From contig NC_068989.1 of NCBI RefSeq assembly GCF_001194135.2, forward strand, positions 39,731,084 through 39,763,225: a stretch of DNA of 32,142 nt, in the 5' to 3' direction. Position numbers and translations under genes: made by a program. The DNA is from Octopus bimaculoides. Taxonomy: Eukaryota. Positions 8,060-31,602 of the stretch are shown piece by piece. The first letter of the stretch is position 1. Every line of letters begins with the position of its first letter. Under the pieces are notes generated by a model. The model was not told where the DNA came from. It saw only the letters and a list, made by a program, of their open reading frames with translations, and did not search any database.

Positions 8060-8068
8060 ATATCCTTT
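8060..8068 (+). promoter_or_regulatory. U12-type 5' splice site ATATCCTTT
   Basis: Exact match to the RTATCCTTT consensus at a codon boundary after AAA. Confidence 0.85.
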
Positions 8069-8357
8069 ACGTAACGCTATACTTTTTAAGAAAGAATATT
8101 ACCATTATCATTATTATTTCAGAAACATGCACAATAAAATGTTAAAATTGCAAGATAATTATGCAAACGTACATATAACCCTGCTACTATAGCCTCTTCC
8201 ACTGGAATTGTTAGATACTCTATGCATATAAAATTCGTTTTCATTTCTTGTTTTCATTTTTTTCCAGCTGATGGATACAGTTTTTTCACTTCATTTCCAA
8301 GTTTTCAGCTATTGATTTTAACATGGAAAAATAGTTGAAAGACTATGCTGTATATAA

Positions 8358-8390
<33 letters not shown>

Positions 8391-8410
8391 TACACATGCA
8401 CACCCATTTG

Positions 8411-8585
8411 TCATTGTTTGCTTAACGTCCACTTTTCCATGTTTGCATGGGTCAGATGAAGTTTATTGAGGCAGATTTTCTATGGTCCAATACCCATCCT
8501 CTTGCCAAACTTTGTTTCCAAGCAAAGAAATATTTTCCCATGGCCAGATATTTTTATGCAGAATATTGGAAATGAATTACACTGT
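8411..8585 (-). mobile_element. SINE family D fragment (reverse complement of 11045-11280)
   Basis: TTAACGTCCACTTTTCCATGTTTGCATGGGTCAGA...AAATATTTTCCC matches the family 3' end. Confidence 0.65.
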
Positions 8586-9093
8586 TCATATGACAGTGAC
8601 TCTCATTTACAACTATCATGTTATATCCAAACAAGGATATCTGAATTGAGCTGCTGTGCTACAGATTCTAGGCTCCTATCCATTCACCCTTATGTCCTTA
8701 TGGTAAAAAAGGACATAACTCTAATTCCCCCTCCACCATTCTTTCTTTTTTCTGTTTTCTTTTTCATTTTTTTCCAGTGTTTTCAATCTTCCACCTTTTC
8801 ATTTACTCCCTTCTTGCCTTTTCTCATATTTTCTCTTATCCTGTCTTCCTGTTTTAGCTTGTTATGCCATGTGGACAGAACCAGAGGATTGTGTGAAGGC
8901 ATCAGACATGTTATAAAATACTGACTGAACTGTTTTCATCACATGAAACTATTAGTGGCTCATAAACACATACTGTGTTTATTGAATAATAGATACAAAT
9001 ATATGCAGCTTCTTAGTTTTTTCTTTTTTTCTATTATTCTCTTTAATTTTGTCCTCTCCTTCAAACATTCATATCTCAAAACCAATGGGAGCA

Positions 9094-9136
<43 letters not shown>

Positions 9137-9189
9137 TGCAAGTTAACACATAAAAGGAAAAGAAAATGCAATTTCCAATCCAAAAATTT

Positions 9190-9975
9190 AAGTATTTAAA
9201 AAATATCAATTAAATATATCAGTTTACACAATGTATCTATCCTCAGCTTCCACTTTGGCCTCAAGACTGCTCCAGAATGTGGCCTATGCATTCCTCAGTG
9301 TGTTTCTAGGAAGATCTTTGAACACCTCCTTCATCTTGACCACCAGCTCAAGCTTGGTGTTTCAGGCCGTGTGGTTGGTGCCTTTCTCAACCACACCCCA
9401 CACGTAGTAATCTATAGCCTTACAATAAGAGAATTAGGAGGCCAGAATTTGGGGCTGGTGGAGTCATAGAATTCTCTGGTAACCACTTCTGACTCTTGCT
9501 AGAGATGTGGCAAGGATCTGAATCCTGTTGTCATACATAGGGCTTTCCAACAACAATCCTCTCCAGCCAGGGTTTGACCACAGTCTCCAGCAATTTTATG
9601 TAGTTGTCTGAATTAAGTCTAAGTCCTTGTTCAAGGATGTGAGTATTACCTGCTGTGTCCCTTCCTGCTGGCCACAGCTTTGTAGTCTCCATTACAACTA
9701 TCCATGTCACATCTTACATCTTTTACAGTGTTCACAGAGCACTGAGTGGTAGTCATGATGTCGACATTTTGATACTTAGCATGAATCCTCATGATCCAAG
9801 TAACACATTTCCAATACTCACATGGTTTCTATTCTTCTATATCAGCTAACTTATTCTTAACTACAACTTAAGTTTTATGCTCTGCAATGACATTGGCTGT
9901 TCTTCAATATATCAAGTTGTTCCTGAAAGAAAAGGAGACGTAAACTTGCCATATTTAGCTTGAACACATTGTATA
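9190..9975 (-). mobile_element. Internally deleted Tc1/mariner remnant (DD37D/maT-like)
   Basis: C-terminal LEQGLRLNSDNYIKLLETVVKPWLE...QQDS.PCH...FWPPNS...EAEDRYIV* fused at ~9645 to N-terminal-like CSVNTVK...DYKAVASRKGHS. Ends are uncertain. Confidence 0.7.
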
Positions 9976-10155
9976 TGCATACATATAAATGCATTACGAG
10001 CTGCAATGTGTCAATTACATTGTTTCTCAATATTTATATCTTCTCTCAGTCTGCCTGTAGGTTCCTGCTTGTCTGCTTGCCTGATTGGCTAACTGCTCAA
10101 CTGCCCACCAGCCTGACTGTTTAGTATTGTTTAGCTTAATGTGCGTATAACATAA

Positions 10156-10157
<2 letters not shown>

Positions 10158-10200
<43 letters not shown>

Positions 10201-10450
10201 TTCTTATTCTTTAAACTTCCAACTTCTTGCTGCCATTGGGTTGGACAGTTTTACAAGATATGATGAGGGTTGAGGACTGCATCATGCTCCAATGTCTGAT
10301 TTACTTGTATGGATAGATGCCCTTCCTAATTCCAACCACTTTGAAGACTGTACTGGATTCTTTTTCATAACACCAGCACTAGTGAGGTCACCATGTAGCT
10401 TGCAAAACAAAGATCCTCTTTGAATGAATGGGGCTACAGTAGAGAGGGCA
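10158..10450 (-). mobile_element. Family C repeat (RTE-type 3' end or RTE-partnered SINE, GGAAGGGCATC motif) with (GAT)n tail
   Basis: GATGCCCTTCCTAATTCCAACCACT and a (CAT)n tail at 10158-10200; a purine-rich extension runs to ~10790. Confidence 0.65.
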
Positions 10451-11044
10451 CGCGAAGGTAGAGAGTATCTCAAGGTACAAGCAGGTAAATAAGAATGGAG
10501 ACAGATGAACAGGTAACATGGGCGTGTAGAGGTTGCAAGAATGAATGGGGAGAGTGAGGGATGTTTAGAGAGATAGGGTATGAGTGAAAGGTGAATACAA
10601 TTGATGAAGAACAAGGGTTGAGGGATTATTGATGATAAATATGAATTGGAGGAGGGTAGGGAAGAATAGGTGATGATGACTGTAGTAATTTGGTGCAAAG
10701 AGTGGATATAGTGAGAGATGGACAAGAATGGAGAGGTGATGGATTTTGTTAAACACCATACAGTGTATGCTGGACACATCTTTCAGGCCACTAGTACTAG
10801 ATGGGTTATCACTCACCTATTACTGTGGAGAGAGATTGGTGGTGGTGGTGGTGGTGGTTGTGTTCCATTTTGAGACCTGCTTTCCAGCTGCATGGTTTTA
10901 AGTTCATTTCCACCATGTGACATTTTAGGCAAGTGTTTTCTACTACAGCCCCAGGCTGAACAACGTTTGTGCTTGGACTTGGTTAAGAGAAGCTGAAAGA
11001 ATTCCATCATGTTTATAAGATGTATGTCTTTAAGTTTATGTCCT

Positions 11045-11280
11045 TTTGTCTTGATATCATGTTATAATTGTAAATGAGAGTCACTGTTATGCAAGCTGTA
11101 CCATTAATTTCTAATATTCCGCAAAAAACATATCTGGGTATGGGAAAATATTACCTTACTTGGAAAGTGGTGAGGGTTGGTGACAGAAAGGGCATTTGAC
11201 TGTAGAAAAATCCATCTCAACAAATTCCATCAGATAATGTAGGCATCAAAAAGTGGATGTGAAAACAATGATGATTATGA
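11045..11280 (+). mobile_element. SINE family D copy
   Basis: GGGAAAATATTACCTTACTTGGAAA...GAAAGGGCAT...GTGGATGTGAAAACAATGATGAT. Confidence 0.65.
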
Positions 11281-11301
11281 TACTATATACATATATACAT
11301 A

Positions 11302-11459
11302 GGTGCAGCATGGCTGATGGTAAGAAGCTTGCTTCCCAACCACATGGTTCTGGGTTCCATCCCACTGCGTGGCACCTTGGGCAACTGTCTTCTACTATAG
11401 CTTCAGTCTGACCAAAGCCATGTGAGGGGATTTGGTAGACAGAAACTGAAAGAAGCCTG

Positions 11460-11505
<46 letters not shown>

Positions 11506-11756
11506 GTATATGTGTGTGTGTGTGTGTGTATTTGTTTGTGTCTGTGTTTGTCACCCCACCCCCCATCGCTTGACACTCAATGTTGGTGTGTTTACATCCC
11601 TATAAATTAGCAGTTCAGCAAAAGAGACCAATATAATAAGTATTAGGCTTACAAAGAATAAGTCCTGGGGTTGATTTGTTTGACTAAAGTTGGTGCTCCA
11701 GTATGGCTACAGTCAAATGACTGAAACAAGTGTAAAAATAAATGAATAAAAGAATA
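11302..11756 (+). mobile_element. tRNA-derived CORE-like SINE (family B, OR2-like) with internal (TA)n(TG)n and a 3' extension
   Basis: tRNA-like head (TGGCTGATGGTAAGAAGC...GGTTCCATCCC) and CORE-like GGCACCTTGGGCAACTGTCTT; a copy in the opposite orientation lies at 30682-31089. Confidence 0.75.
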
Positions 11757-11794
11757 TGTGTACATACATACATATATACATATTATATATATAC

Positions 11795-11824
<30 letters not shown>

Positions 11825-11825
<1 letters not shown>

Positions 11826-11912
11826 CATCATCATCATCATCATCGTTTAACGTCCGCTTTCCATGATAGCATGGGTTGGACGATTTGACTGAGGACTGGT
11901 GAAACCGGATGG

Positions 11913-11915
<3 letters not shown>
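11825..11915 (-). mobile_element. Truncated family C 3' fragment
   Basis: (CAT)n then CGTTTAACGTCCGCTTTCCATG...GGGTTGGACG. Confidence 0.7.

Positions 11916-11970
<55 letters not shown>
11916..11970. repeat. (CA)n microsatellite
   Basis: Visible. Confidence 0.95.
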
Positions 11971-11975
<5 letters not shown>

Positions 11976-12211
11976 ACCGCAGTCCACAGATATTGCTTTG
12001 TGCTGAGTGAGAATGCTGAACTCCCCAGTTCGAAAATATAAGGACATAGATAGTGTGTCATATACCCAGCTGGAGATGATATTGCCTGGGGCTAAAAAAC
12101 AGTAACATTTGTCCCAACCGGGACTGCCACATTCTGTTGGCAAATAATCTTTACTTTAGAGTACTGTTACTGAATGTCTCTCATTAAGAGATTTAGAAAT
12201 GATAATGTTTC

Positions 12212-12249
<38 letters not shown>

Positions 12250-12479
12250 CACATAAACATATACATGTATGTATATATATATATATATATAAGTGATTAA
12301 TAAATACAAGTAGTTACCTATAATGCACTCTGTTAAATGAATTTAGCTAACTGTACCAAAGAATCAGATACTAATAAATGCAAGTAGAATAAACATTCAA
12401 AGTAATTCTTCATGTATATGTATAAGCTTGTATGTGTGTAGATATATATATGTGTATGATAGAAAGAGGTGAGAGAACT

Positions 12480-12640
12480 GCACGTGTGTATGACTGTGGT
12501 TATGAAACTTCGTTTGCAACCATGTTTTCAGGTTCTGTCTTATTGTGTGCCACCTTGAGCAAGTATTTTCTTCTTTATCCCTAAGTCAGGTAATTCTTTA
12601 TGAGCAAATTTGATATATGGAAACTGTGCACCTGCTTGTT
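12480..12640 (+). mobile_element. Decayed family B (CORE-like) SINE
   Basis: GTGCCACCTTGAGCAAGTATTTTCTT...ATTTGATATATGGAAACTG. Confidence 0.55.
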
Positions 12641-12904
12641 TTATACATACATACATACATATTTTGTAAACAAACTTTAGAAACACCAAGTGTGTTGGTA
12701 TTTTACAGACAAGAATGTAAGTTTAGCTCCGGGCCAACTAATATTTTATGAGCAAATTTGGTATATGGAAAGTCTGGACCTGCCTGTTTTAAACATACAT
12801 ACATACATATCTATCTTTCTCTCTCTATATGTATATATATATATTGTAAACAAACTTTAGAAGCACCAAGTGTGTTAGTATTTTTGCAGACAACAATGTA
12901 AGTT
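12597..12904 (+). repeat. Imperfect tandem duplication (units ~12597-12724 and ~12746-12904)
   Basis: TTTATGAGCAAATTTG.TATATGGAAA and TGTAAACAAACTTTAGAA.CACCAAGTGTGTT.GTATTTT each occur twice in the same order. Confidence 0.85.
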
Positions 12905-12933
12905 TTGAACACAGAATAACTGTGTAAACAACT

Positions 12934-13940
12934 GAGAAGATGGAAAAAATAAGTTGCCAATAGGCAGCTATAGAAAATTGAACCCCATGTCTCTCAGGTA
13001 CCAGCTGAGTGCTCTATACCATTTAGCAAGGTGGTCTCTGACAACAATTACCATCAATTTTAATGTTAAATATTGGGTCATCCCATAAATGATGTGTTTT
13101 GTTTATACTTCTTTTAGTTTTCAAAATTAAGATAAGCAAAGTTCTTTTTTAATCTAAGATATACTATCCTTCATTTTTTACAATGCTCTTCCATCTATAT
13201 GGTAGGCTTGCAAGGCCCTCTTCCAAAATTCACTTGTCCATGATTAAAAAGTAGTCCTCTAGTACTGTTCTGACCTCATCTACAGAATTCACATTTTTTC
13301 CATCCAAATGATTTTGAAGACTGCGGAATAAATGATAATCAGATAGGGCAATGTCCAGAAAATATGGTGGGTGGGGCATCATTTCCCATTCAAACTGCTC
13401 CAGCCTTTGGAATGTCATACTCGCTGTATGTGGCTGAGAATTATCCTGATGGAAGAACACCGTTCGTCTTGAAACCAAAGATGGTTGTTTTTCTTCTGGC
13501 ACTGACTTGAATGACTGATTGAATGACCAAATCCAAACTTCTCTGTTAGTTACTTAACAGTTACAATGGGATTTCGTTCCACCAGAGTTTGCAAGACGTC
13601 CTCGTCAAGCTCTTCACATTTTTCAGGACAAGGATCGTCTTCTAGGCTGTAGTTTCCAGCTCAGAATTTCAGGAACCACCATTGACACTCGCTTACGTTT
13701 ATTGTCTGATCCCCATATACTGCATTAATATTCCTCACACTTTCTGTTGTGTTGTTGCTTTTGTTGAACTTATTAATTGGGATAAACCAATAATAGCATT
13801 CCCAAAAGCTATTACTTAGCATTAAAATTGTTGTCAGGGGCTGTGTAGCTTAATAATACAGAGCACTTACCCAGTATCTGAGAGATATGGAGTTCGGTTC
13901 TCTTTAGCCACCTGCTGGCAACTTTTCTTCTGTCTTCTAA
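12934..13940. repeat. Imperfect inverted repeat, ~135-bp tRNA-like arms (12934-13072 and 13813-13940), enclosing a mariner remnant
   Basis: Left AAGTTGCCA...GAACCCCATGTCTCTCAGGTACC...GAGTGCTCTATAC...CTGACAACAATT is complementary to right AATTGTTGTCAG...TACAGAGCACTT...GTATCTGAGAGATATGGAGTTC...TGGCAACTT. Confidence 0.75.
13073..13790 (-). mobile_element. Non-autonomous mariner with two internal deletions, degenerate TIRs and a TA at both ends
   Basis: HTH remnant (TESVRNINAVYGD...GNYSLEDD) joined at ~13520 to the catalytic C-terminus (HQDNSQPH...PHPPYFLDIALSDYHLFRSLQNHL). Ends are TA|TTGGGTCATCCCATAAAT and ATTAATTGGGATAAACCAA|TA. Confidence 0.8.
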
Positions 13941-13997
13941 TAGTAAACACCCAATCTTTCTTGGCTATTTTCATAGCTATAGTGCATTCGAAATTTA

Positions 13998-15283
13998 CGA
14001 GATGGTATCAAAAAGTTCCTGGACTATATATACATTTACTAAGAAATAACTTATCTACTTAAGTTTTAACTTTATTTCTTTCGAAATAGTCACCTTACAC
14101 AACAATACACTGGTCCCTGTGTTCTAACCACTTTTGGAATCTGGCTTGGAGGTTGTTTTCCATAGGTGGGAGTACCTTCTGCATTTTACTCTGGATCTCA
14201 ACAACACTGTTAAAATGGTAACCTTTGAGCTGCAGCTTCGTCTTGGGAAAGGGATGGAAGTTTGCAGGTGCTAAATCTGGTGAATAGGGCAGATGTGGAA
14301 GTGATACCATATTGCCTTTTGGTGAGAAAGCTCATTGACAGGGTGTATTGTTGTTGTGAAGAATCCAATTCTTTGCACTCCAGAGATCTGGTCACTTTTG
14401 CCAATGTCCTCCCTCAAATGCTTCAAAACATCACAGGAGAACTCTTGATTGATGGTCCGACCCTGGAGGATGAATTCTAGGTGCACAATACCACAGATAT
14501 TGAAAAAATATGATGGGCAGGGTCTTGATTGAGCTGCGACTCTGTCATACCTTCTTTGGTCATGGAGATGAAGGGCTCTTCCATTGTGACAACTGGTGCT
14601 TCATCTCAGGGTCATTTCCATAGACCCAACTCTCATCAGCAGTGATGATCCTCAACATGAAGGATGGACCATCAGCAGCATGCTGACAGAGATCTTGACA
14701 GACTTCAATATGATGTTCTTTCTGCTCAGTGGTCAGTGGGTGGGGGACAAACTTGATAGAGACATGCCACATGTTCAATTCAGATGTTAGGATTGCCCAT
14801 ACAATAAACCAACAACATCAGTAATTTTTGTTGATTGTCCACTGACTATCCTCATGCACAAGCTGATGAATTTTTTCCACATTTCTGACGGTGATGGTCA
14901 TGGCAGGTCTTCCAGATCACTCATTGCCTGCCAGGGACGTTCTTCTGCTTTTGAAGTATACAACCCATTGTGTACGACCCATTGCCTTGTTGCTGTAAGC
15001 TTGCTGAAGCATACTCAACGCCTCTGTAGCAGACTTCCCAAATGTAACACAAAATTTCACATTGGCTCTTTGTTCCAACTTCCTGTCCATGAGAAAATCT
15101 CAGACTACAGCATACATATGATCACAAAAACACAAATTTCACAGGCTGCGAAGCAGACACAGTGATATTACTCAGCACACTGCTTCATGGAGGTGACTGC
15201 TAGCTGTCACAGCACATGCCTCTGTGTGCTGCCATCTATTGGCGTACTACAGAACCAGTCTGAGAAATTTTGATATCACCACG
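13998..15283 (-). mobile_element. Full-length (1286 bp) but inactivated mariner, different from the neighbouring one
   Basis: TA|CGAGATGGTATCAAAAAGTTCCTGGACT ... AGTCTGAGAAATTTTGATATCACCACG|TA. Fragmented transposase: FVPHPLTTEQK, IITADESWVY, HLEFILQGRTINQEF, PYSPDLAP. Confidence 0.9.
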
Positions 15284-15306
15284 TACTTCCTTGTTTGTAA
15301 AATACA

Positions 15307-15359
<53 letters not shown>

Positions 15360-15572
15360 TGTGTGTGCATGCATGTGTGTGTGTGTGTGTGCATATGTGT
15401 ATTTGTATGTGGGGGTCACAACTTGAAAACAGTTATTTGTTTTTGTCCCTGTAACTTAGATATTTGGTGAGAACAAGATTGATAGAATAGGTGCCATATT
15501 TAAAGAAGTAATTGACTAAAGCCCTTCTAAGTAGTGCACCAGCATGGCTACAATACACTCTCTGAAACAAGT

Positions 15573-15870
15573 ATCTGTATATATAAAACTGAGAATGTCT
15601 GTCTGTCTGTTTGTCTATCTATCTGTCTCTCTGTATGTGTGCATCACTAAAACCAGAGAACGACCCAACCAATTTTCATTTGAATTTTACACGTGTCTTA
15701 CTTAAGGTCCATGTATGTCATGGAGCAAAAAAATTTTCAACTTCTTGCTTAATGTGAGCCCTGAGCAATCTCTTATCTCTTACACTATTTCAGTATTACG
15801 TGTCAAAAGTGAAACAATAATGTTTCTATTGTAATGTGAGATAATAATTTCAGTTTTAATTATTTCACTA
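15573..15870 (+). mobile_element. Non-autonomous Helitron/Helentron-associated (DINE/HINE-like) element
   Basis: Begins ATCTGTATATATAAAACTGAGAAT, then a (GTCT)n microsatellite, then core-like CCAACCAATTTTCATTTGAATTTTACAC; family assignment from memory. Confidence 0.55.
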
Positions 15871-15904
15871 ATACTACTGAAGCTATTATCTCACATATAT
15901 ACAA

Positions 15905-15947
<43 letters not shown>

Positions 15948-16482
15948 NNNNNNNNNNNNNNNNNNNNNNNNNNNNNNNNNNNNNNNNNNNNNNNNNNNNN
16001 NNNNNNNNNNNNNNNNNNNNNNNNNNNNNNNNNNNNNNNNNNNNNNNNNNNNNNNNNNNNNNNNNNNNNNNNNNNNNNNNNNNNNNNNNNNNNNNNNNNN
16101 NNNNNNNNNNNNNNNNNNNNNNNNNNNNNNNNNNNNNNNNNNNNNNNNNNNNNNNNNNNNNNNNNNNNNNNNNNNNNNNNNNNNNNNNNNNNNNNNNNNN
16201 NNNNNNNNNNNNNNNNNNNNNNNNNNNNNNNNNNNNNNNNNNNNNNNNNNNNNNNNNNNNNNNNNNNNNNNNNNNNNNNNNNNNNNNNNNNNNNNNNNNN
16301 NNNNNNNNNNNNNNNNNNNNNNNNNNNNNNNNNNNNNNNNNNNNNNNNNNNNNNNNNNNNNNNNNNNNNNNNNNNNNNNNNNNNNNNNNNNNNNNNNNNN
16401 NNNNNNNNNNNNNNNNNNNNNNNNNNNNNNNNNNNNNNNNNNNNNNNNNNNNNNNNNNNNNNNNNNNNNNNNNNNNNNNNNN
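15948..16482. other. Assembly gap (535 N)
   Basis: N run flanked by (AT)n. Confidence 1.
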
Positions 16483-16913
16483 ATATATACAAGCATACAT
16501 ACACACACACACATATATATATGCATGTATATATGTGTATATGCATCTGCACATATATATGTATGTATATATATGTATATATAGATATATATGTATACAT
16601 ATGTATCTATATCTATAAACAGCAGGATGTGTGTGTATGTGAATGTACTTTATGCACGTCCACAAATTAGCAAGCATGTTGCTCCAATTTTAGAAGGACA
16701 ACCATAACTTTTATCAATTTGGAATGTCAGTGAAATCTGTAAGTTTGCTAACATGAGTTAAGTCCCCTTCTTGCAATGGCGAAGAGAAGATGTGTGTTGA
16801 TATGTATGTGTGTGTGTGTGGGTGTATGTGTTTGTGAGGGGGAGAGAGAGAGTGACAGCATACATTTTAAAAATTTACTTTTCATTGCATCTTTTTTGAG
16901 TGAGTGATTGACT

Positions 16914-16953
<40 letters not shown>

Positions 16954-17157: not shown

Positions 17158-17602
17158 NNNNNNNNNNNNNNNNNNNNNNNNNNNNNNNNNNNNNNNNNNN
17201 NNNNNNNNNNNNNNNNNNNNNNNNNNNNNNNNNNNNNNNNNNNNNNNNNNNNNNNNNNNNNNNNNNNNNNNNNNNNNNNNNNNNNNNNNNNNNNNNNNNN
17301 NNNNNNNNNNNNNNNNNNNNNNNNNNNNNNNNNNNNNNNNNNNNNNNNNNNNNNNNNNNNNNNNNNNNNNNNNNNNNNNNNNNNNNNNNNNNNNNNNNNN
17401 NNNNNNNNNNNNNNNNNNNNNNNNNNNNNNNNNNNNNNNNNNNNNNNNNNNNNNNNNNNNNNNNNNNNNNNNNNNNNNNNNNNNNNNNNNNNNNNNNNNN
17501 NNNNNNNNNNNNNNNNNNNNNNNNNNNNNNNNNNNNNNNNNNNNNNNNNNNNNNNNNNNNNNNNNNNNNNNNNNNNNNNNNNNNNNNNNNNNNNNNNNNN
17601 NN
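17158..17602. other. Assembly gap (445 N)
   Basis: N run. Confidence 1.
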
Positions 17603-17695
17603 GTTTATATTTACTCCTTTGGCTGATTAAGCGATGTAAAGTGTATTTAATCTCCATACCTTCGTTTTATTTGCTTTTTTCATTTTAAATTTGCT

Positions 17696-17753
17696 TTAAC
17701 CCTAACCCTAACCCTAACCTTAACCCTAGGGTTAGGGTTAGGGTTAGGGTTAA
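17696..17753. repeat. Interstitial telomeric-type repeat forming a palindrome, (CCCTAA)n-CCCTAGGG-(TTAGGG)n
   Basis: Directly visible; symmetry axis between 17727 and 17728. Lies within a probable interspersed element (~17603-17991). Confidence 0.9.
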
Positions 17754-19102: not shown

Positions 19103-19133
19103 TATTCATACATACATACATATACATATATAC

Positions 19134-19187
<54 letters not shown>

Positions 19188-19236: not shown

Positions 19237-20329
19237 TATATATATAATATATATATATAAATTATATCACAAAATGGCAGCTTACTCTCTATTTGTGTTT
19301 TGCCTGGCATCTGATTGGAATTATATGAGGAAGAAAGTGCATCAATGCAAACTTCTTTGTTCTGGGAATTTGTAAGAATATGTGCTTGTCTTTGAGTGTC
19401 TATCAGAAAGTAGTAATCAAATTTTTTTTTTTTTTGTTTTGTTAGTATTTACATATATAGGGAATGATATGCATACAGGCATGAGTTATCATTTTGACAT
19501 CCATCACTTTTATCATTACCAACATCCATTGATATCTATCATATTCTTTCTTTCTAACATTACTTCTTTCATCATTCATTGTTGATGTGCATCATTCTCT
19601 CTCTCTCTTTGTCTTGTTTACTCTCTCCTGTCACTCTCTTTTGTTTCACTTTTTCCATCACCCTGACTCCTTCAAATCACTTTCTTTTCCTTTCCTCTCA
19701 TTCAATCACCATGTCAACAAACAGCTTATACCTATCACTGCATCTCTTCCATTGCTGCCACCCTCTATAACCTTCTTACCTTTCTTATTTTTACTATCAT
19801 GCTTCCATTGCTACCCCTCTTATCATCCACATGTCTTTAGCACTGTTTCTCTTTTATTGTTACCTTTCTGTAACTCTTTTGCACCTGTTTCTGTCTTCCT
19901 TCCACTGCTACTTTTTGAATCACCCTCTCTCCTTATCACTGTCTCTCTTCCATTACTTCCCCTTCTGTCGCCCTCTTGCCTCTTTCACAGTTTCTCATTG
20001 CTACTCCCTCTATCAAACTCTTTCTCACTCCTATTTTTGCATTTCCCCATCATAATCTTTCTCCTGTCATCCTTTACCCTAATCTTCTCTCTTTCATCAA
20101 ATTAACAAATCCTAGGTTATTAAGTATAATTGCATGTTCTTAGCTAAGAACTTCTCTTGTAACTGTCTCTTTTAGGAGACTGTATTGCTGCTACTGTTTC
20201 CTTAATCAAGCCCAAACTGTATTTCATCTAAGCTAAATACAAATGATTAAAATTCAGTAGTCTTCATCCTTTTTCATTCTTTCCATGTATATAATGCTGA
20301 TAATAATAATAATGATGATGATGATGATG

Positions 20330-20371
<42 letters not shown>

Positions 20372-20393
20372 GTAATAATAATAATAATAATAA

Positions 20394-22942
20394 TCATACC
20401 ACTTTTTTGCTCTGTCAGGTCCATACTTGTTGCAAAGTGTCCAATGGACAATCCTTGCTATGTTGTCATGACGTCTCTTATATTCTTTCTGGGCTAGTGG
20501 CGTACATTGACTGGTAATATGCCATACGGTCACACCATTTTGTCCACAAATTCTGCACTTATCACTTTCTGATGTGTTGTCTATTTTGTATTTGTTGTAA
20601 TTCATTCTTAATGCTTTGCTCTTGGGCAGCACAGATTAGAGCCTCCGTTTCTGGTTTTAAATCACTTTTAGTCGTCCTTAGCCATCGTTTTTCTCTGTTT
20701 GTCTTACCTTCAACATCCCTATGAAATTGTCCATGCATTCTTTTCTTTATCCATCTATTTTCAGTTTTATTCATTCTCAAATCCTTGTACAGTGCTTTAT
20801 CTTTGCAAGCTTCCATCCTACACAAGCCTGACCTTCTTACTTCCAATAATAGCAGTTCTGCGGCATTTTTTACATACCATGCTATGTTGTTTTCTTCTGC
20901 TCTAATGCTGTGTTCACATCCAGTCAGTCCTCTTCCCCCTCTTTTTCTTGGTACATATAGTCTGTCTATGTCACATTTTGGGTGGAGTATCCCATATCTA
21001 GTCAGCAACTTCCTTGTCTTTCCATCTAAGCTGTTTAGTTTATCTACTGTCCATGCAATTACCCCTGCTCCATATCTAAGGAGTGAAACCTCCCAGGTGT
21101 TGATAACTGCTTCGATCTTATTCCGTCTGTTTAATTTCGACTTAAGGATCCTTCTTAGTCTGTGCAAGTACTCCACCTTAAATTTTTCTGTCATTTTTTT
21201 GTCCATCAATTTATCTATTTCCAAAATCCCCAAGCACTAACAGCACATCTCTTCTATCTGCTTAATAACCTCCCCCAACAGTATCGTTAGTCTGTCCATA
21301 CATTTGATTTCGCCTCTCTTCAAGACTAACACACCACACACTCTCAGTATGAACTCCATTCTGATATCAGTACTGAAGGTATACACCGTATCAATGAGGG
21401 AACTGACTTGGAATTCATCTTTACCATAAAGTTTGAGGTCATTCATGAATAACAAGTGGTTGACATTTTGTTGGCGGCTTTTGAATATATACCTAGCCTT
21501 TGCTTTCCTCGAAATCAGTGTTAGTGGTATCATGCACAGTACAAAGATCAGTGGGGATAGGCAGTCCTCTTGGAAATTGCCTCTCCTAATTTCTACTATC
21601 CCTAAACTTCTTCCATATGCTGTCAGTTCCATCCTTCATTTCACCATACTTTTTCCAAGCAATCACTCAACATTCAATGCAATACCAAATAGGTTCATAC
21701 ATTCCATAATCCAAGAATGTGGGATCATATTCTATGCCTTACGATAATCGATCCATAACATGGCTAAGTTACTTTTCCTCCTCTTGCAGTCTCTAAGTAC
21801 AGTTTTGTCTACCAGGTTTTGATCCTTGGTACCTCTGCACTTACGCTTGCAACCCTTCTGCACATGTGGCAGGACACCATTTTTTTCCAGATCACCATGC
21901 ATTTACTCTGTGACTATTCCAGTCAATAATTTCCACATAAGTGGCAAGCAGGATATTGGCTTGTAATTGTCTACTGTATCACCTTTTTCAATGTTTTTCA
22001 ATCACAGTACTGTCCTACCCAGTGTCAACTACTCTGGTGTTACTTGGTCAGCATTTAACAAGGTATTGAGTTGCATAGCTATTCGTGCATGACATTCAAC
22101 AAATCTTTTGATCCAGTAACGTTGAAATGTATCTGGTCCAGGGACCTTTCGATTGCCCATTTTTATGCTGATTTCCTTCACTTCCCTAACTGAAACGACT
22201 ATTTTTGCCTGTTTTGGACAGACTACTGTTTGTTTCAGTTCTTGCAACTATTCAGCATCCTTCTTGTACTCCTTGTCTTTGTTCTAGATGTCACTCCAAA
22301 ACCTTTGACTTTAAATGTTATCTGGTATCAACTTTTCATCTGCACACTCTCCATTTATTTCTTTGTAGAATCTCTTCTGATCTACTTTGAATAACCTATT
22401 CTGCTGGTATCATTTCATTCTTACCATCTTTGATTTCTTTACAATGAAGCACTGTTTCAGTTCCTCCATTACCACTTTCAGGCCCTTTCTTTCAATATCA
22501 TACTTCCTGTTTTATGATTCAGTGCGACCATGAAATAGAGAATAGGAAACCAGACATAGTGTTAATTGAGAAAGAAAGCAAATGATGCTGGATCATAGAT
22601 ATAGCATGCCCAGTTAACAACAAGGTATGCGATAAGGAAGAAAGAAAAGTTGATAGATATAACAGGTTAGCTTGGGAGGTTAAACAGTTGTGGTTGCTGA
22701 AAAAGGTGGTAGCAGTACAAATAATTGTCGGAGCCCTGGGAATTGTGAGTAAAATTCTTGAGAAGTACATAGAACAAATAGGGGCTGCAATAAGGGTGGA
22801 GCACTTGCAGAAAATCGCACTGCATGGTACCGCTCAAATACTCTGGATGGTGCCTGAAAAATAAGGGGTGTTACCTTAGTTCATTAGTAGTGAACAGCTG
22901 ACACTGTAGTACATCTCCAGCATTAGAAGCTGTGCAAAGACA

Positions 22943-23001
<59 letters not shown>
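20394..23001. mobile_element. Dong/R4-clade RLE LINE with a 5' inversion: inverted body 20394-22508 (-), 3' end 22510-22945 (+), (TAA)n tail 22946-23001
   Basis: Minus strand: [21 protein letters not shown] motifs (IRRGNFQEDCLSPLIF, NHLLFMNDLKLYGK), LHPKCDIDRLYVPRKRGGRGL, zinc knuckle CRICGQNGVTVWHITSQC...RRHDNIARIVHW...KKWY. Plus strand: FMIQCDHEIENRKPDIVL...IIDIACP...IIVGALG...LQKIALHGTAQIL*. Flanked on the left by (TAA)n at 20301-20393. Confidence 0.88.
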
Positions 23002-23129
23002 TTGTTCATCCATTGTTGTTGATGACCAAAGACATCACATGAGAGAAGATGGGTCACAGTGCATCTGGCTGTGGCCAATCAGGCCAATGCATGCCTGCAA
23101 GTTTCTGCCACAAGTTAGGCACTGGTGAT

Positions 23130-23275
23130 CTGCTGGGAATAAAGGCAAGGAGTCTGTTAAAGTTACCAGCCTTGATGAAAAGATGGCTACTACCTATTAT
23201 CATGGTACTTTGCAAAAGGATGTCATAGAAGTGGTCCTTATATTTGTCTGTGAGTCCTGACAGTGGCAATACATG
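23130..23275 (-). mobile_element. Decayed RTE-type APE endonuclease fragment
   Basis: GLTDKYKDHFYDILLQST...LFIKAGNFN resembles the RTE motif QP GL...KD.FYD.L...GDFN. Confidence 0.45.
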
Positions 23276-24254
23276 TAAAGAACAGTGTTGCTGTCATGTT
23301 GCATGTGACTTGTGTTGTGGTATGCTATTTCTGCATGTGCATTTGGTATAGAGTTAATTCTTATCATTAACAATTAAATGTCGTCATTTCTATGAACAAC
23401 AAAGGAAAGATGTTTACACTATTAAGATATATGAGATTTATATGGATTTGGTATAACAGCAGTCGCTGTCATGTCTTTCTTTGAATTAGCTGGTTCGGAT
23501 GTATTGCAGTCACCACAACCACCATCGTTGTCATCATCGCTGTCATCGTTGACCACTGTCTTGGTGCCACAGACACGACTCTGGTTTGCTTTCTGGTTCT
23601 CTGCTCCTTTTTGCTATCTGCTGGTTAGTAGCTAAAATGCTCTAAATATACAACCAATGTTCTTCATAGAAAAAATACACTAAAAATTTAATCCTGTTTC
23701 ACCAGAGGTTTAAGTGGTTGGTGTTTTGATGACGTCAGCAATATTTGAACAAATTACATTTCAGTTACTTAGTTTGTTTGTTTTTTTGCATTGGATACAG
23801 TGATCTAAGTTTGATTTCTAAGTTTTTCTGTGACTGTCAGATATTCCTGCTATACCAGTCTTAATTTCAATTATTCTATCACATACTATGATTATCACAA
23901 TTACATTATTTCTCCATCTCTGTTCCTGCAATATAACCAACTTTGCTAACCTTTGTGTAGTTATGCCTGGTGTATAAATGTTATAAGTTCATAGCCACCA
24001 GTTTAATAATGTAAAAAAAAAAAACACAATCATCATCACCACCACCGATATCATCATCATTATTGTGATGGTGATCATCATCATTGTTATGAGGCACATA
24101 AAACCAGCATCATCAGTATGGTTACTACCATCTTTTCCATCATCATCACCACCACTACCATTATCATCGTCATCATCGTCATCATCATCACCACCACCAC
24201 CACATCATCATTCGCATTATATTATCATCATATCATCATCATCATCATCATCAT

Positions 24255-24650
24255 ATTATTATTATTATTATTGTTCAGTAGTTTTATTTTTATAACGTGT
24301 TTTCACTTCACTACCGAGCGCAGCTCTGTGTGCCTTGGGTATGTGCTGTGGTTTGCTGTGGTACTCTTATGGTTACTGTATTGAAAGTGTTTTGTGTAGG
24401 ATGTGTGCAGTGCCCAGTAGTGCAATTTTCTGTATGTTATATATATTTGTAAGTCCTGGTGTTTTTGTTGTGTATTTGTCTGAATATTTTTTTATTATAC
24501 CTAAGGCACCTACTATGATAGGAATTGTTTCTGTTTTTAGATTCCACATTTGAGTTACCTCTATTTCCAGGTCTTTGTATTTTGAAAGTTTTTTCCATTT
24601 CATTTAGAGAAACGTTGTCATCTGCTGGTATTGATCCATCAATTAGAAAG
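24255..24650 (-). mobile_element. 5'-truncated 3' end of a second Dong/R4-type family, flanked by (TAA)n on both sides
   Basis: FLIDGSIPADDNVS...EKLSKYKDLEIEVTQMWNLKTETIPIIVGALG...IQKIALLGTAHIL; (ATT)n at ~24255-24272 and 24662-24760. Confidence 0.82.
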
Positions 24651-24687
24651 CTTTTTTTTCTTTTATTATTATTATTATTATTATTAA

Positions 24688-24761
<74 letters not shown>

Positions 24762-25415
24762 CATCACCATCCTCATCACAATCACCACAAACCACTGACA
24801 CCATCATCGATACCATAACCATCATCAACAAACAGCAGGACAAGGTTTCAAACTCTCCTTCAATTTTGAGGCCAGTAGTCACCTGATTTAGCCACCATCT
24901 TGTCTGCAACATAAAAGAAAACAAAGTTAAAATAAAAGACAAAAGAAAAAATAACCAAGAAAAATGCAAGTGTTTTCAGTGATTCCTTCAGTTAATTGGT
25001 TAAACAATAATATGTTCATTCTTCTATTCAAGCTTACTTCAATATTTCTTCAGAATTTTACAGTGTTTCATTGATTCGTTAATTTAGTATTTAATATTTT
25101 TCTTTTCCACTGAACAACCATTAACATCAAAGGAATTCATCAAACATAAGACACGAGTAAATCTTTTTGAGGACATCGAATGTTTCTGTAGGATGGCAAA
25201 CTGTTGTCATCACCACCACCATCACCACCACTACCACCACATCTTTTTCTCCTCCTCCATCCCCTGCTGTCATCATTGTCATCCTTGTGTTCCTACGCTT
25301 GTGTCTGTAAGAGGTTACTTTTCTTGTGATGCACTTGGCAGACAAGAAGTGCATTTGAGAGATATATATAAACAAACATATTTGGAGAAGGAAGGAGAAA
25401 GAGAGAAGTAGAGAA

Positions 25416-25458
<43 letters not shown>

Positions 25459-25468
25459 NNNNNNNNNN
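25459..25468. other. Assembly gap (10 N)
   Basis: N run after (TA)n. Confidence 1.
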
Positions 25469-25601
25469 ACTCTGAGTGGCTGAGGAGTGAATCTTTGATA
25501 TGTAAATATCAATAAACCTACTACACACATTGTGTACCATTTTTTCATATGTATTTCTAAACAAATACTCTAACACACACACATGCATGCATGCACGCGC
25601 G

Positions 25602-25650
<49 letters not shown>

Positions 25651-25912
25651 CGATTTTACATCTGCTGTTTCTTGAGTTCAGCAGTTTTGCCATCTTCTCA
25701 TCACTCATCAAGTCTTTTGTTCAGAGCACTCAAGAAAAGACAAAAAAGTTGTCCATCTTTCTGTGCTGCCAGTCATTGCTACCTCTCTTCTTGGACCATT
25801 TGTTACTGACATTCATCACTCACTCTTAGTTTTGTCTGTTATTATCCACTACTTTCTCACCCAAACATTCTCCAACTCCCTTCAGCCACTTATTCTGATT
25901 CTGTTTTTTTCA

Positions 25913-25917
<5 letters not shown>

Positions 25918-25990
<73 letters not shown>
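25918..25990. repeat. (CT)n microsatellite
   Basis: Visible. Confidence 0.95.
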
Positions 25991-25993
<3 letters not shown>

Positions 25994-27992
25994 TGTCTTC
26001 TCTGTCATGCCCAGAGCAAATGAACGTATCTTACAGTAGGAAGGGCTCTTTACTGTTACTGGGTACAGAGCAACCCCATTCATGCTAATGCCATGATAAA
26101 ATGAACCCAGTACACTTTTCAAGGTGGTTGGTGAATGATTAGAGACAGTGTAAGGTTGAAAAGTACCTTTAATTTTGTTGAGTACTTGTGAACATCTCTA
26201 GTGTTGGTACCATGATCAAATGCACTCATTATGCTCTGCAAAAGGGTTGCTGATAGAATGAGCATTCAGTCATAGAAATCAAGCCAAAAATGAATCTTAT
26301 GGGTGAGATTTGGAATTCTGATTTGACTCGGAGGGCATGGAGATACCTGTTGTATTGTTGTATAACCTGCTAGAAATACCAGCCAAATTTCTCTTGAAAC
26401 ATAGTTTTCCTTCTTAAAAAAAAAGGAGACTTATTAGATAGTATAATCCTGAATCACTGTCTCAAAATAAGATGAGATGCTCATGACTGGACTAATTTGA
26501 TCATAAAATTGGCTGATCAAAACTGACCTTGGGCTAAACAGCAACAATTTATTGGCATTATATTTAATCAAAAGAAATCAGTATCATTGTTTGTAAGCTC
26601 AGGATATATATTTTGCCATTAAAGGCTGTTGGTTAATAGATTTTTAAGTAGGTTTCACTGAAACACTTAACTGTGAATAACTATTTACAATAGCTATTGT
26701 GAATAAGTATTGGAAAATGGCAATTATGACTAGCTATTGTGCATTGGTTTTGTTATTTCGAAGCAAATATATTACTTTGTAGAGATGTGTATGTAAGCAG
26801 AAAATATGGTAAACATAAGATAATTAGGTTGAAATTATTCCCAAGATTTTTCAATCATATTCTAATCAAATAAAGGTTTAGCAATGGAATGCATGCATGC
26901 TGTGATGGTTTTTGTCATTGAATTGAACTGAATTCACCACTGAGGATAGTTGAAAGGCAGCAGAATTATGTTCCTGGGTAATGTTAATTTGTGGTAGATT
27001 TGCTTCTTCATATGTATCTATGTATCATTGGTTCCCCCCAACATTCCTTATCCACCCTTCATTACATCCACTCCTCAATCCTACCCTATTTCTACAGATG
27101 TTACTTACTCTTCTCTACCTTTCTTACTTATCTGCCCTCAGCAGCTGCTCTTCACGATATCCACCTACCTCATCCATTTCTAGTCTCTAACCATCTCTCA
27201 CTCCCCCATATACTCTTACAAACTCTATTCACCTGCACTCACTGTTCTCTTGTTCCTACTCATTTTTACTCTCCTATTATCTTGAGGCACCTCACACCTC
27301 ATCACTATTTTTATTTCTTTCTGGCCCCACCCTCATCACTCCCAACTTCCCTTCAGTAATGTGAGAAGCCATGAGGCTACTTTACAGCAAGAAAGTAGCC
27401 TCAGTAAAGACTACTGACCACATCACTCTAAACATTGTTTGCTGCTACTGTAGGAACAGCAACAGACTATGACACTCTTTTGAGAAATGCTTGTTGCTAT
27501 GTATCAGGCTTCAGATTGAACCAGCAAAATGAAGAAACGAATTGATCCAACAGTGAGCTATGCCATGCATAAATTAATTTTGTTATTGTAATGAAAAAAG
27601 AAGCAAGAAAACTCTCAAACTATTCAGTTCATGCTTTGATAGGTCTTGCTTCAATAGAACAGCAGCAAGACATTGCTTCTGTCTTTTACCATGTGGAATA
27701 TAGTGAAGACAGTATTACATAACCTTAAACCACTCTTGTTGGATATAAGAGCTTTAGAACCACAGACCATTGCAGCTTCAGCAGTTACTACAAGCTACAC
27801 ATCTTTTGATTAATTATAAGGATTTTAATTCTCCATAATTGACTGGCTTTTGCAATCAGTTACATTTTGATAAAGTAGTCCAAGTTTACTCAGCAATAGA
27901 AAGGCACATATTTTGTCAGATGTAACACTTCCAAGTTGTAGCCATTATGATTTCAGTACTTATTGCAAGCTACATAATTGTAAACAAATCAC

Positions 27993-28501
27993 TATGCTTG
28001 GTCAAAAACAGAACCCATAAAAATTTTATTAAATCCTACAAAGGTCCAGCAAATTTCTTTGAATAAAAGTCATGTTCTTTTCAAAATATGCTCCAAATGG
28101 CATACGTTGCACAGACACTTGCAAATGCCACGCAAAATTGTCAATTACTTGAACACATTCCTCTTTGGGGATTTCCCTGATTTCTGCTGTGATCGCTGCC
28201 TTCAGTTCACCAATCGTTTGAGTGTTGTTCTAGTAAACATTATCCTTGAGATACCCCCGCAGATAAAAATCTGGAAGGGTTCAAGTCTGGTGAATGTGGT
28301 GCCCACTCAATGTCACACTTCCTGCTGATCAGTCTCTCCTGAAATCACTCTCTCAGCCAGACTAGAGAGTTATTTGATGTGTGGGTGGTGGCCCTGTCTT
28401 GCTGGAACCACTGTTCATCTTGATATAACCCTCTGCGTCATTTTATTCAAACAGTTTTATTCAAAGATTCGTGGGTTCTGTTTTTTTTTGGGGTCACCCT
28501 G
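27993..28501 (-). mobile_element. Internally deleted Tc1/mariner-superfamily element (DD41D-like C-terminus)
   Basis: QWFQQDRATTHT...ERLISRKCDIEWAPHSPDLNP...; right end GGGGTCACCCTG|TA; AAAAACAGAACCCA is present in inverted orientation near both ends. Confidence 0.65.
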
Positions 28502-29169
28502 TATCACTGGAATCAACAACTTTGCAGTTATAAAGTATGCATTCTTGAATAGAAGTCAGTACCACAGGAAACAACAAGTCTCTTTTCTTTTCAATTGGTC
28601 TAAAGTACTAGGTATGTTGAACTTGCAAGTACACTTTTGTGAGCATGATTACATTTTGATTACATCCCTGGAAGATACAAAAGTGAGCAAACATGTGGTT
28701 TTGTATTTATAGCTGGAAATAATGAAACCATGTGGCTTCCTTCTCTCCCCTCTGAGGTTAACACTTTTTTTTATCTGCTATCACTTTCAATACCCTAACA
28801 TATCTACTCCACTACCCCTGTGCTTCTTCTATATTTCACTCCATCATTTGCTACACTCACCTCTATTTGCCACACTTAACTCTGTCCTTCCCACTCACCA
28901 AGTCCAGACCTCTGTATCACCTCACTTATTCTCACCACCCCCAGTGTCCCAACTCTTCACCATCATCTCTCTCACTATTGTTCTCTTAATTTCACTCTCT
29001 AACTCATTTGCTCTCTTTATCTTACTCTCTAACTCACCCTTCTTTCCATCTGGGGTACCCATGTATCTACTCTACAGCAAGGTACCTATCCCTGTCCCTC
29101 TATATCTTTGATCTCTCATCAAATGGCACAAAACCACTACCACCTTCAATACCACTCCCACCTCCCAGC

Positions 29170-29445
29170 TGAAGAGGTCATTGTCTTGCAAGGTACTTGG
29201 TAACCCTGTTGGTGTTGGTACCACATAAAATGCACTGATGCTATTGTCACATAAAGTGCACTGGTGCTGGTACCTCATGAGAAACACCTAGTACACACTG
29301 TAAAGTGGTTGGCATTAGGAAGGGCATCCAGCTATAGAAACTATGCCAAAATAGACAACGGAGCCTGCAGCAGCTCCTGTCAGTCTGTCCAATCCATGCC
29401 ACCATGGTAAAACAGACATTAAATGATGATGATGATGATGATGAT
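29170..29445 (+). mobile_element. Family C repeat with ~22-bp internal subrepeats and (GAT)n tail; CT-rich upstream extension from ~28720
   Basis: GTGGTTGGCATTAGGAAGGGCATCCAGC...CAGACATTAAATGATGATGAT. Confidence 0.75.
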
Positions 29446-29886
29446 TTCAACTACCAGTCTATCGTTTCTGCTTCTCATCATATGCTGTTTATGTTACAAT
29501 TACATCATGGGTATTTATATACACATGCACATATTATCATTTTGTTTGCTTGTTTGAAATTTTGTTGAATAAAAACAATAAAATAAGACATGAAAGATAA
29601 GAATAAGACAAGGGTAATTGTAAACACATGTCATTACCAACCTCCACAAAAATGCAGACCTCCTTAACTCTTTCACAGTTTCTTAACACATTGCTCTTTC
29701 TAAATAACTATGAGCTTTATTATTTTATTCTTTTACTGGTTTTAGTTATTTTTTTTAATATTTTACTTAGAAGGGAAGGCAGTGCCCATGACACTTTGAG
29801 GTGAAAATAGTGGGAGGAAGGTAGGAGTGTGTACTCAAACCAGAGACCTAACCCTAATGCTTGCAACTGAGTGGGATCTGCTAAAA

Positions 29887-30182
29887 CAGGAGTTTTCAAA
29901 CTGGTCCGCGGACCACAGGGGGTCCGCAAGGACAAGACAGGGGGTCCGTAGACAGCAAATACTTTTTATGGGCAATTTGATTTTATATATGTTTTTTTAA
30001 TCAAAATCTTTTAATTGACAATAAACCCATTTGTTAAATACTGTTAAATAAATAAATGCCAAAATATATGTTATTTTAAGCAAATATTTATGTATAAATT
30101 TCATAAGCGTTTATAAGGGGGTCTCTAAGGTAAAGCCTGAAATATAAAGGGGTCCGCAAGTCAAAAAGTTTGAAAACCCCTG
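29887..30182. mobile_element. hAT-family MITE, 296 bp
   Basis: TIRs CAGGAGTTTTCAAACT / AGTTTGAAAACCCCTG (15/16 match); 8-bp TSD TGCTAAAA at 29879-29886 and 30183-30190; subterminal GGGGTCCG repeats. Confidence 0.92.
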
Positions 30183-30400
30183 TGCTAAAAGACACTCCAA
30201 GACCAGGTAGTGGTGATAATAAACATCTACCAACCTGGAATGGAGCTATGCTGAGAAATATTTTCACAAGTGTTGTCAATTGAATTGACTCCATTACTTA
30301 TGCTGTCTTTGTAATTAGTTTCTGGTCAACCTTGGCTGAGCTGACCTATGGTCCAAGACAGTCTAGCCATGACCATCTCTGTTTATATATCCAAAAGTAT

Positions 30401-30658
30401 ATAAAAAGCATTGGTGTGGATGCTGGTGCCATGTAAACACCACTGGTGCTGGTGCTACTTAAACATTGGTGATGGTGTCACATAAAAAGCACCCAGTACA
30501 CTCTGTGGGGTGGTTGCCATTAGGAAGGGCATACAGCCTTAGAAACCAAACCAAAACAGACTATGGAACCTGCTGTGGCACCTGACTTTACCAGTTCCCA
30601 TCAAGCCGTCCAACCCATGCCAGCATGAAAAACGAACATTAAATGATGTTGATGATGA
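30401..30658 (+). mobile_element. Family C repeat copy
   Basis: GGTGCTGGTGC subrepeats, ATTAGGAAGGGCATACAG, GTCCAACCCATGCCAGCATG, GAT tail. Confidence 0.75.
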
Positions 30659-30681
30659 GATAATCAAACTTGTTTTGAGCG

Positions 30682-31089
30682 TTATCTTTTACTTTTTTGA
30701 TTCACTAGTCTGTGGCCATGCTGCGGCAATGCCATGAATTTTTAGTTGAATGAATCAACCCCAGTACTTTGTTTTTTTTTAAGAAGTGGTACTTATTCTA
30801 TCAGTCTCTTTTGCTGAACTGCTAAGTTATGGGGACACAAACACCCCAACACCGGTTGTCCTGTGATGATGGGGGGACAAACATAAACACAAAGACACAC
30901 ACAGATTTATATACATGTATATACATACGATGGGCTTTTCTTTCAATTTCCGTCTACCAAATCCACTCACAAGGCTTCGGTTGGCCCAAGGCTATAGTAG
31001 AAGACACTTGTCCAAGGTGCCACACAGTGGGACTGAACCTGGAACCATGTGGTTGGGAATCAAGCTTCTTACCACACAACCATGCCTAC
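30682..31089 (-). mobile_element. Family B CORE-like SINE with 3' extension
   Basis: Reverse complement of the 11302-11756 family (TTTCCGTCTACCAAATCCACTCACAAGGC...AAGACACTTGTCCAAGGTGCCAC). Confidence 0.8.
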
Positions 31090-31190
31090 TGTAAACTGTG
31101 AAATTTTACTGTTACTTCTAGCAAACTCAGTCACTCCACTACTTATTTTATAGACTGATCCATAGTTTCTCAAACTGAAAGAAATGAACA

Positions 31191-31420
31191 GGCGGTGAGC
31201 TGGCAGAAATGTTAGCAAGCCGGGCGAAATGCTTAGTGGTATTTCATCTGCCGTTACGTTCTGAGTTCAAATTCCGCCGAGGTCGACTTTGCCTTTCATC
31301 CTTTCAGGGTCGATAAATTAAGTACCAGTTACGCACTGGGATTGATATAATCGACTTAATCCCTTTGTCTGTCCTTGTTTGTCCCCTCTATGTTTAGCCC
31401 CTTGTGGGCAATAAAGAAAT
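31191..31420 (+). mobile_element. Young full-length family-A tRNA-derived SINE with a 14-bp TSD
   Basis: Head GGCGGTGAGCTGGCAGAA...GAGTTCAAATTCC, CpGs retained, AAGAAAT tail; AAGAAATGAACAGG at 31179-31192 and 31421-31434. Confidence 0.88.
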
Positions 31421-31581
31421 AAGAAATGAACAGGAATGTGGGTCTTGAAATGGTTTCGAACTGAAGAACTTGAATTTTCTACTTCATCCTCATTACACAA
31501 AGCATTTTGTCTGATGCTTACATGATGATGCTGCAGTCCACTTATCTATTGTTTATTTTCATTCTTTTCAACTTTGAAAAA

Positions 31582-31602
31582 TTCCTTAACAATTGATGCC
31601 AC
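31582..31602 (+). promoter_or_regulatory. U12-type branch site and AC 3' splice site
   Basis: TTCCTTAAC followed after 10 nt by AC; no AG between 31537 and the exon start. Confidence 0.83.

Follow-up and report, generated by a model that had tools for sequence, protein, structure and literature searches.

Does the interval between positions 8060 and 31602 of a stretch of the Octopus bimaculoides genome represent a single intron of the minor class, and is its great length exceptional for such an intron? The stretch in question, called the window below, comprises 32,142 nucleotides (nt) of contig NC_068989.1 (positions 39,731,084 to 39,763,225 of the forward strand; assembly GCF_001194135.2) and covers part of the gene for tetratricopeptide repeat protein 23 (TTC23). 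An earlier note on this DNA had described the interval as an AT-AC minor intron of about 23.5 kb, packed with transposons, and had seen in it a natural test of how splice sites are bridged over long distances. The analysis described here led us to conclude that 8060-31602 is very probably one intron of O. bimaculoides TTC23 that is removed by the minor (U12-dependent) spliceosome, and that its size is ordinary.

The interval separates two TTC23 exons that join in frame

An exhaustive HMMER search with the peptide joined across the interval found a protein of 462 amino acids (aa) that was 99% identical to it over a single unbroken stretch. According to the source records, this protein is TTC23 of Octopus bimaculoides (XP_014777218). 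The joined exons 1057-1182, 7933-8059 and 31603-31685 were translated into residues 193-303 of XP_014777218 with 0 mismatches, and 6 positions within the same stretch differ from the protein of O. sinensis; the window is therefore O. bimaculoides DNA. The start of the exon upstream of the interval, which the earlier note had set at 7931, is corrected to 7933. The exons join in frame as ...LDWGK/FVQQGG... (a slash marks the splice junction here and below), and removal of 8060-31602 restores the frame of XP_014777218. In addition, one TPR_12 (Pfam) match spans the 8059/31603 junction collinearly. When the joined peptide (71 aa) was used in a word-indexed search for homologues, no match was obtained, and word-indexed searches with XP_014777218 and with the alignment gave 3-4 proteins only. 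A PDB search with the joined peptide returned matches to tetratricopeptide repeat (TPR) and designed-repeat entries only, none of which was significant.

The ends of the interval carry minor-class splice signals

The 5' site ATATCCTTT follows directly after the last codon of the upstream exon and fits the minor consensus /ATATCCTT at intron positions +1 to +8. At the opposite end the sequence reads TTCCTTAAC AATTGATGCCAC/TTTGTA. The perfect branch site TTCCTTAAC matches the motif TCCTTAAC, and its A31589 lies 13 nt from the last intron base, within the distance of about 10-15 nt that is usual for this subtype. The 12-nt spacer behind the branch site contains 6 purines, and no polypyrimidine tract is present. 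Taken together, the donor, the branch site, the terminal AC, the lack of a polypyrimidine tract and the frame all agree with the AT-AC subtype.

A single copy of ATATCCTTT was found in the window, located on the + strand at position 8060, just as the earlier note had stated, and 0.42 occurrences were expected by chance on both strands. The branch-site sequence TTCCTTAAC was found twice, at 1032 and at 31582, both on the + strand (0.35 expected); the latter, together with the AC at 31601-31602, is the pair that had been noticed 23.5 kb downstream of the donor. By themselves the motifs could be due to chance, but their placement could not: the sites coincide exactly with the ends of two coding exons.

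The intron is shared with other molluscs and a hemichordate

For comparison with Octopus, TTC23 loci were taken from an oyster (Magallana gigas), an octopod (Argonauta hians) and a hemichordate (Glandiceps talaboti). An AT-AC intron with the donor ATATCCTTT was present in 3 of the 3 orthologous loci at the codon boundary seen in Octopus, which follows the G-K/R codon and precedes L/F-E/V-Q, with a branch site of the TCCTTRAC type 9-13 nt upstream of the terminal AC. The orthologous intron measures 369 nt in M. gigas (branch site ATCCTTGAC), 898 nt in A. hians (branch site TTTCTTAAC) and 2,187 nt in G. talaboti (branch site ATCCTTAAC). The comparison of orthologous lengths, which the earlier note had named as a check, gave shorter introns in every case: the Octopus intron is 11-64 times longer than these three, and the excess consists of repeat-rich sequence. 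Exon order and orientation agree between Octopus and the orthologues.

DNA similarity between Octopus and Argonauta ends at intron base +9 and restarts 7 nt before the branch site (31575). Within the intron, only the two splice signals are constrained. An orthologous minor intron can thus grow more than 60-fold while only the 9-nt donor and the branch-site/AC signals persist. That molluscs and a hemichordate both have an AT-AC intron at this codon boundary suggests that it arose before their split, and the intron is, judging from the sequences of these loci, ancestral at least to bilaterians. A published comparison of the conservation of minor introns includes Octopus sinensis (Larue and Roy 2023).

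Removal of the intron by the major spliceosome via cryptic GT-AG sites, with the minor-type motifs present by coincidence, was also considered. A GT follows the exon end at a distance of 11 nt (8071-8072), and an AG lies 12 nt past the AC (31613-31614). However, use of this cryptic pair would shift the length by +11 and −12 nt and so break the frame, whereas only the exact AT...AC boundaries yield the annotated protein. Furthermore, ATATCCTTT, the branch site and the AC have been kept in four species belonging to two phyla. The probability of this alternative is regarded as negligible.

A further exon within the interval is unlikely

In the Octopus proteins the junction reads GK/FV (O. bimaculoides) or GR/FV (O. 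sinensis) with no insertion, and an alignment of XP_014777218 with six relatives (7 sequences) contains no gap at this position. For a relative with 43% identity, the whole open reading frame (ORF) of 495 aa is unbroken on each of two independent 2-kb Logan contigs, which are assemblies of sequencing runs; these contigs must represent mRNA. On the strength of the gap-free protein alignments, the collinear TPR_12 match and the uninterrupted ORF of the relative, a constitutive coding exon is judged to be excluded within 8060-31602, the gaps in the assembly included. For exons of this kind, the earlier statement that no exon intervenes is upheld.

The interval might nevertheless consist of two or more introns if an unannotated exon, whether alternative, non-coding or bearing a premature stop, lay inside it or in a gap. 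A decoy minor-type 3' signal at 29661-29678, after which a frame is open to 29801, speaks for this and is possibly a cryptic minor 3' splice site. On the other hand, XP_014777218 and its six relatives are gap-free at the junction, the ORF of the relative is continuous on contigs of mRNA size, and the sizeable open frames within the intron are all transposon relics or low-complexity runs. Such a hidden exon is therefore considered unlikely. Because the decoy provides a second TCCTTAAC with AC and AG inside the intron, the true 3' site was identified by homology of the downstream exon and not as the sole candidate.

Assembly gaps affect the length but hardly the linkage of the exons

The interval contains 990 nt of N, in agreement with the count of about 990 in the earlier note, and these are distributed over three runs that make up 4% of the intron (Table 1). 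Since the gaps lie in the intron, they are irrelevant to the frame and affect only length and linkage. The flanks of gap 1 (15897-15947 and 16483-16500) have the 15-mer ATATATACAAGCATA in common; the contig ends may overlap there, in which case the gap of 535 N would be too large or altogether spurious. The telomere-like palindrome that follows gap 2 at a distance of 95 nt folds into a hairpin of 27 bp (−27 kcal/mol, z-score −7.2) and was not found in the other TTC23 loci.

These observations raise the question of whether the length of the intron or the linkage of its exons is an artefact of assembly, with the gaps concealing a misjoin, a collapsed duplicate or a true sequence that is far shorter or far longer. 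The presence of three gaps, the shared 15-mer on both flanks of gap 1, as if contig ends overlapped, and the vicinity of the palindrome to gap 2 would be in line with an artefact. However, the gene spans are near-equal in O. bimaculoides (182,607 nt) and in the separate assembly of O. sinensis (182,444 nt), and the models of both species have 462 aa and the same junction. The exon order and orientation shared with the orthologues and the small proportion of gap sequence also argue against it. In addition, gaps 1 and 3 lie within (AT)n runs, in which short-read assemblies commonly break. We consider an artefact of this type very unlikely.

Three points weigh against a single minor intron with the boundaries given here. 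With the AC and AG behind it, the decoy branch site of 29661-29678 might serve an alternative 3' site that is not annotated; the use of the junction in vivo is deduced from RefSeq models of two Octopus species and from homologues; and the three assembly gaps introduce an error of roughly 1 kb into the length. The length of the intron is best given as about 23.5 kb ± about 1 kb. With its signals at the exact exon ends, the restored frame and the orthologues, the AT-AC minor intron of about 23.5 kb that had been proposed for this locus (23,543 nt as assembled) stands.

Predicted course of splicing

The use of the minor spliceosome and the removal of the interval in one step are inferred from the sequence and from the established mechanism of this class of introns. 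U11 small nuclear RNA (snRNA) would pair with the 5' site ATATCCTTT, and U12 snRNA would pair with TTCCTTAAC, the branch site 13 nt away from the terminal AC, both sites being recognised by the U11/U12 di-snRNP (di-small nuclear ribonucleoprotein). Recognition of the sites is probably aided by exon-bridging contacts across the short flanking exons of 127 and 83 nt, which border a U2-type acceptor and a U2-type donor, respectively, on their other sides. During approximately 23 kb of transcription the 5' site would have to stay engaged, and catalysis would then join 8059 to 31603. In the octopus lineage, transposon insertions and microsatellites stretched the intron from a few hundred or a few thousand nt to about 23.5 kb.

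A second AT-AC intron is located upstream

The first 1056 nt of the window represent the 3' portion of another U12-type AT-AC intron in TTC23. The start of the exon behind it was placed at 1057 because KK/YVESEKN of XP_014777218 requires that start. The two AT-AC introns of Octopus TTC23 are separated by two exons and one U2-type intron. The orthologous upstream intron (ATATCCTTT...AC) was found in Glandiceps (2,089 nt, at 13692-15780 of the locus sequence) and in Argonauta (4,336 nt, at 4020-8355 of the locus sequence), and it is absent from the TTC23 locus of the oyster. The annotated TTC23-like protein of Argonauta hians (314 aa, truncated) reads KYPFTHS into this intron where KYSDSEEH is expected (approximately 4020-4045 of the locus sequence). 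This looks like a mis-annotation caused by the AT-AC intron, and gene pipelines that disallow AT-AC introns mis-model TTC23.

Lists of minor-intron genes for human and mouse include TTC23 and TTC23L. The TTC23 minor intron has served as a model in RNPC3 knockdown experiments, in which its retention was observed for human TTC23. The minor intron of human and mouse TTC23 lies in the same gene family and is also of the U12 type, but it differs from 8060-31602 in its GT-AG subtype (AAA/GTATCCTTT) and in its length of 184 or 203 nt. The reverse transcription-polymerase chain reaction (RT-PCR) primers for the human intron in the RNPC3 knockdown encode ARQILA and SKELLQC. These peptides presumably bracket the position of the upstream octopus intron (KK/Y), so that the probable counterpart of the vertebrate minor intron is the one ending at 1056 and not 8060-31602.

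On balance, we lean slightly towards a history with two successive ancestral AT-AC introns, both of them present in the hemichordate and in Argonauta, of which the oyster lost the upstream one and vertebrates keep only the upstream one, converted to GT-AG. If this is true, the downstream intron constitutes a natural length series (369, 898, 2,187 and 23,543 nt) with unchanged splice signals, in which the length-dependence of minor-intron kinetics could be studied.

Repeats in the intron and other features of the window

The larger part of the intron consists of debris from repeats and transposons. Repeats account for at least 38% of the read bases of the intron and for 43% when tentative calls are included (assigned without a repeat library); tandem repeats make up 6.6%. 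Approximately 13 repeat pieces are firm, and about 5 more are tentative. The richness in repeats described by the earlier note is thus real, and its count of more than 20 transposable-element remnants is plausible only. The published whole-genome repeat estimate for O. bimaculoides is 35%, and the intron is ordinary octopus DNA that is not exceptionally dense in repeats. Several dispersed families recur in the window and have many copies in the 18-kb Argonauta locus.

The transposon matches were obtained after frames had been joined by hand, and single open frames gave no Pfam match at an E-value (E) of ≤0.01. The internally deleted mariner element matched HTH_48 (E 2.4e-9, 37.6 bits compared with a Pfam cut-off of 24.1) and the Mos1 transposase (E 1.2e-15). 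Its inverted repeat of 115 bp has 73% identity, and no clear TA duplication is readable at its decayed ends. For the second mariner relic, no inverted ends were found. The element at 20267-22247 is tentatively assigned to the non-long-terminal-repeat (non-LTR) retrotransposons, partly from a reading of its motifs; its match to RVT_1 (E 0.07-0.16, 12-13 bits) is below the cut-off of 29.6, and a PDB search with it gave no match.

A family of repeats resembling short interspersed nuclear elements (SINEs), of approximately 170-200 bp, has 6 copies in the window (at 3076-3272, 6511-7447 and 31181-31363), four of which form a near-tandem array shortly before exon 7933-8059, in the U2-type intron. 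No Rfam family and no tRNA-like sequence was detected in scans of the window, so that nothing in it points to an RNA gene nested in the intron or to a SINE of tRNA origin. Near the start of the intron that follows exon 31603-31685, approximately 100 nt past the donor, lies an imperfect (GTA)n/(GTG)n microsatellite about 360 nt long (31780-32142). The spans of TTC23 in O. bimaculoides and O. sinensis are only 163 nt apart in spite of their repeat-laden introns.

Table 1. Features of the TTC23 window, with positions counted from its first nucleotide.
Feature	Position	Strand	Remarks
3' part of second AT-AC U12-type TTC23 intron	1-1056	+	branch site TTCCTTAAC at 1032-1040, AC at 1055-1056; donor outside window
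TTC23 coding exon	1057-1182	+	residues 193-234 (YVESEKN...DFAQ); exact match to XP_014777218
U2-type GT-AG intron	1183-7932	+	6,750 nt; SINE-like repeats abundant at 6511-7447
TTC23 coding exon	7933-8059	+	127 nt (LYSKQ...LDWGK); end is a codon boundary
AT-AC minor intron	8060-31602	+	23,543 nt as assembled, 990 nt N
U12-type 5' splice site ATATCCTTT	8060-8068	+	directly after last codon of exon
Mariner element, internally deleted	12935-13938	-	inverted ends of ~115 bp (12935-13049, 13826-13938)
Mariner transposase relic, frameshifted	14098-15121	-	SETMAR/Hsmar1 E 2.3e-15, Mos1 E 1.6e-13, Transposase_1 E 0.0024
Assembly gap 1	15948-16482		535 N, in AT-rich microsatellite; ATATATACAAGCATA on both flanks
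Assembly gap 2	17158-17602		445 N; unique flanks
Telomere-like perfect palindrome (TAACCC)5(TAGGGT)4	17697-17752		95 nt after gap 2
Decayed non-LTR-retrotransposon-like element (tentative)	20267-22247	-	reverse-transcriptase-like open frames, then cysteine-rich tail
Fragment resembling C-terminal tail of a retroelement of the 20267-22247 type	22448-22861	+	inferred, no database support
Fragment similar to 22448-22861	24376-24603	-	
Assembly gap 3	25459-25468		10 N placeholder, after (AT)n run
Decoy minor-type 3' signal	29661-29678	+	perfect TCCTTAAC, AC 9-10 nt on, AG 11-12 nt on; unused in annotated mRNA
SINE-like repeat copy	31181-31363	-	~240 nt upstream of 3' splice site
U12-type branch site TTCCTTAAC	31582-31590	+	A31589 is second A of motif, 13 nt from last intron base
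Intron-terminal AC	31601-31602	+	
TTC23 coding exon	31603-31685	+	83 nt (FVQQGG...SIATA), then U2-type donor AA/GTATGT

Comparison with known minor introns

The mean intron of TTC23 is estimated at approximately 15 kb (about 182 kb divided by roughly a dozen introns, as counted on the oyster exon map), so that the 23.5-kb intron is only about 1.5 times the estimated mean intron size of its own gene. Prototype AT-AC introns, for example intron F of P120/NOP2, have the donor /ATATCCTT, the branch site TCCTTAAC near the 3' end, a terminal AC and no polypyrimidine tract. They are approximately 100 nt long and biochemically tested, whereas the Octopus intron of 23.5 kb is predicted from its sequence. 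What the Octopus locus adds is a pair of conserved AT-AC introns and a 64-fold length series at unchanged signals. Its significance beyond annotation quality is small, and a TTC23 intron at this codon boundary is now documented for molluscs and a hemichordate.

The mean length of U12 introns is correlated with genome size (r = 0.87), and it was argued that the size of U12 introns is not limited by intron definition (Moyer 2020). A correlation of 0.90 was obtained between the median lengths of minor and major introns (Larue and Roy 2023). Retention was found to be more frequent in shorter, not in longer, minor introns (Olthof 2019). In one part of the human minor-intron table of the same study, 7 of about 190 entries are at least 23.5 kb long, and the lengths given there include 23,579 nt for MAPK14, 35,968 nt for ATXN10, 41,876 nt for PDE6D, 47,265 nt for AGBL4 and 522,707 nt for FHIT. 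Since human minor introns reach hundreds of kb and U12 intron length tracks genome size, the question of whether great length is tolerated has already been answered. The special significance as a test of long-distance bridging that the earlier note had attached to the locus was therefore overstated: the size of the Octopus intron is ordinary, and minor introns this long and far longer are already known. The long human minor introns are likewise of the U12 type, are of equal or far greater length and lie in expressed genes; they differ from the Octopus intron in belonging to other genes and to another phylum.

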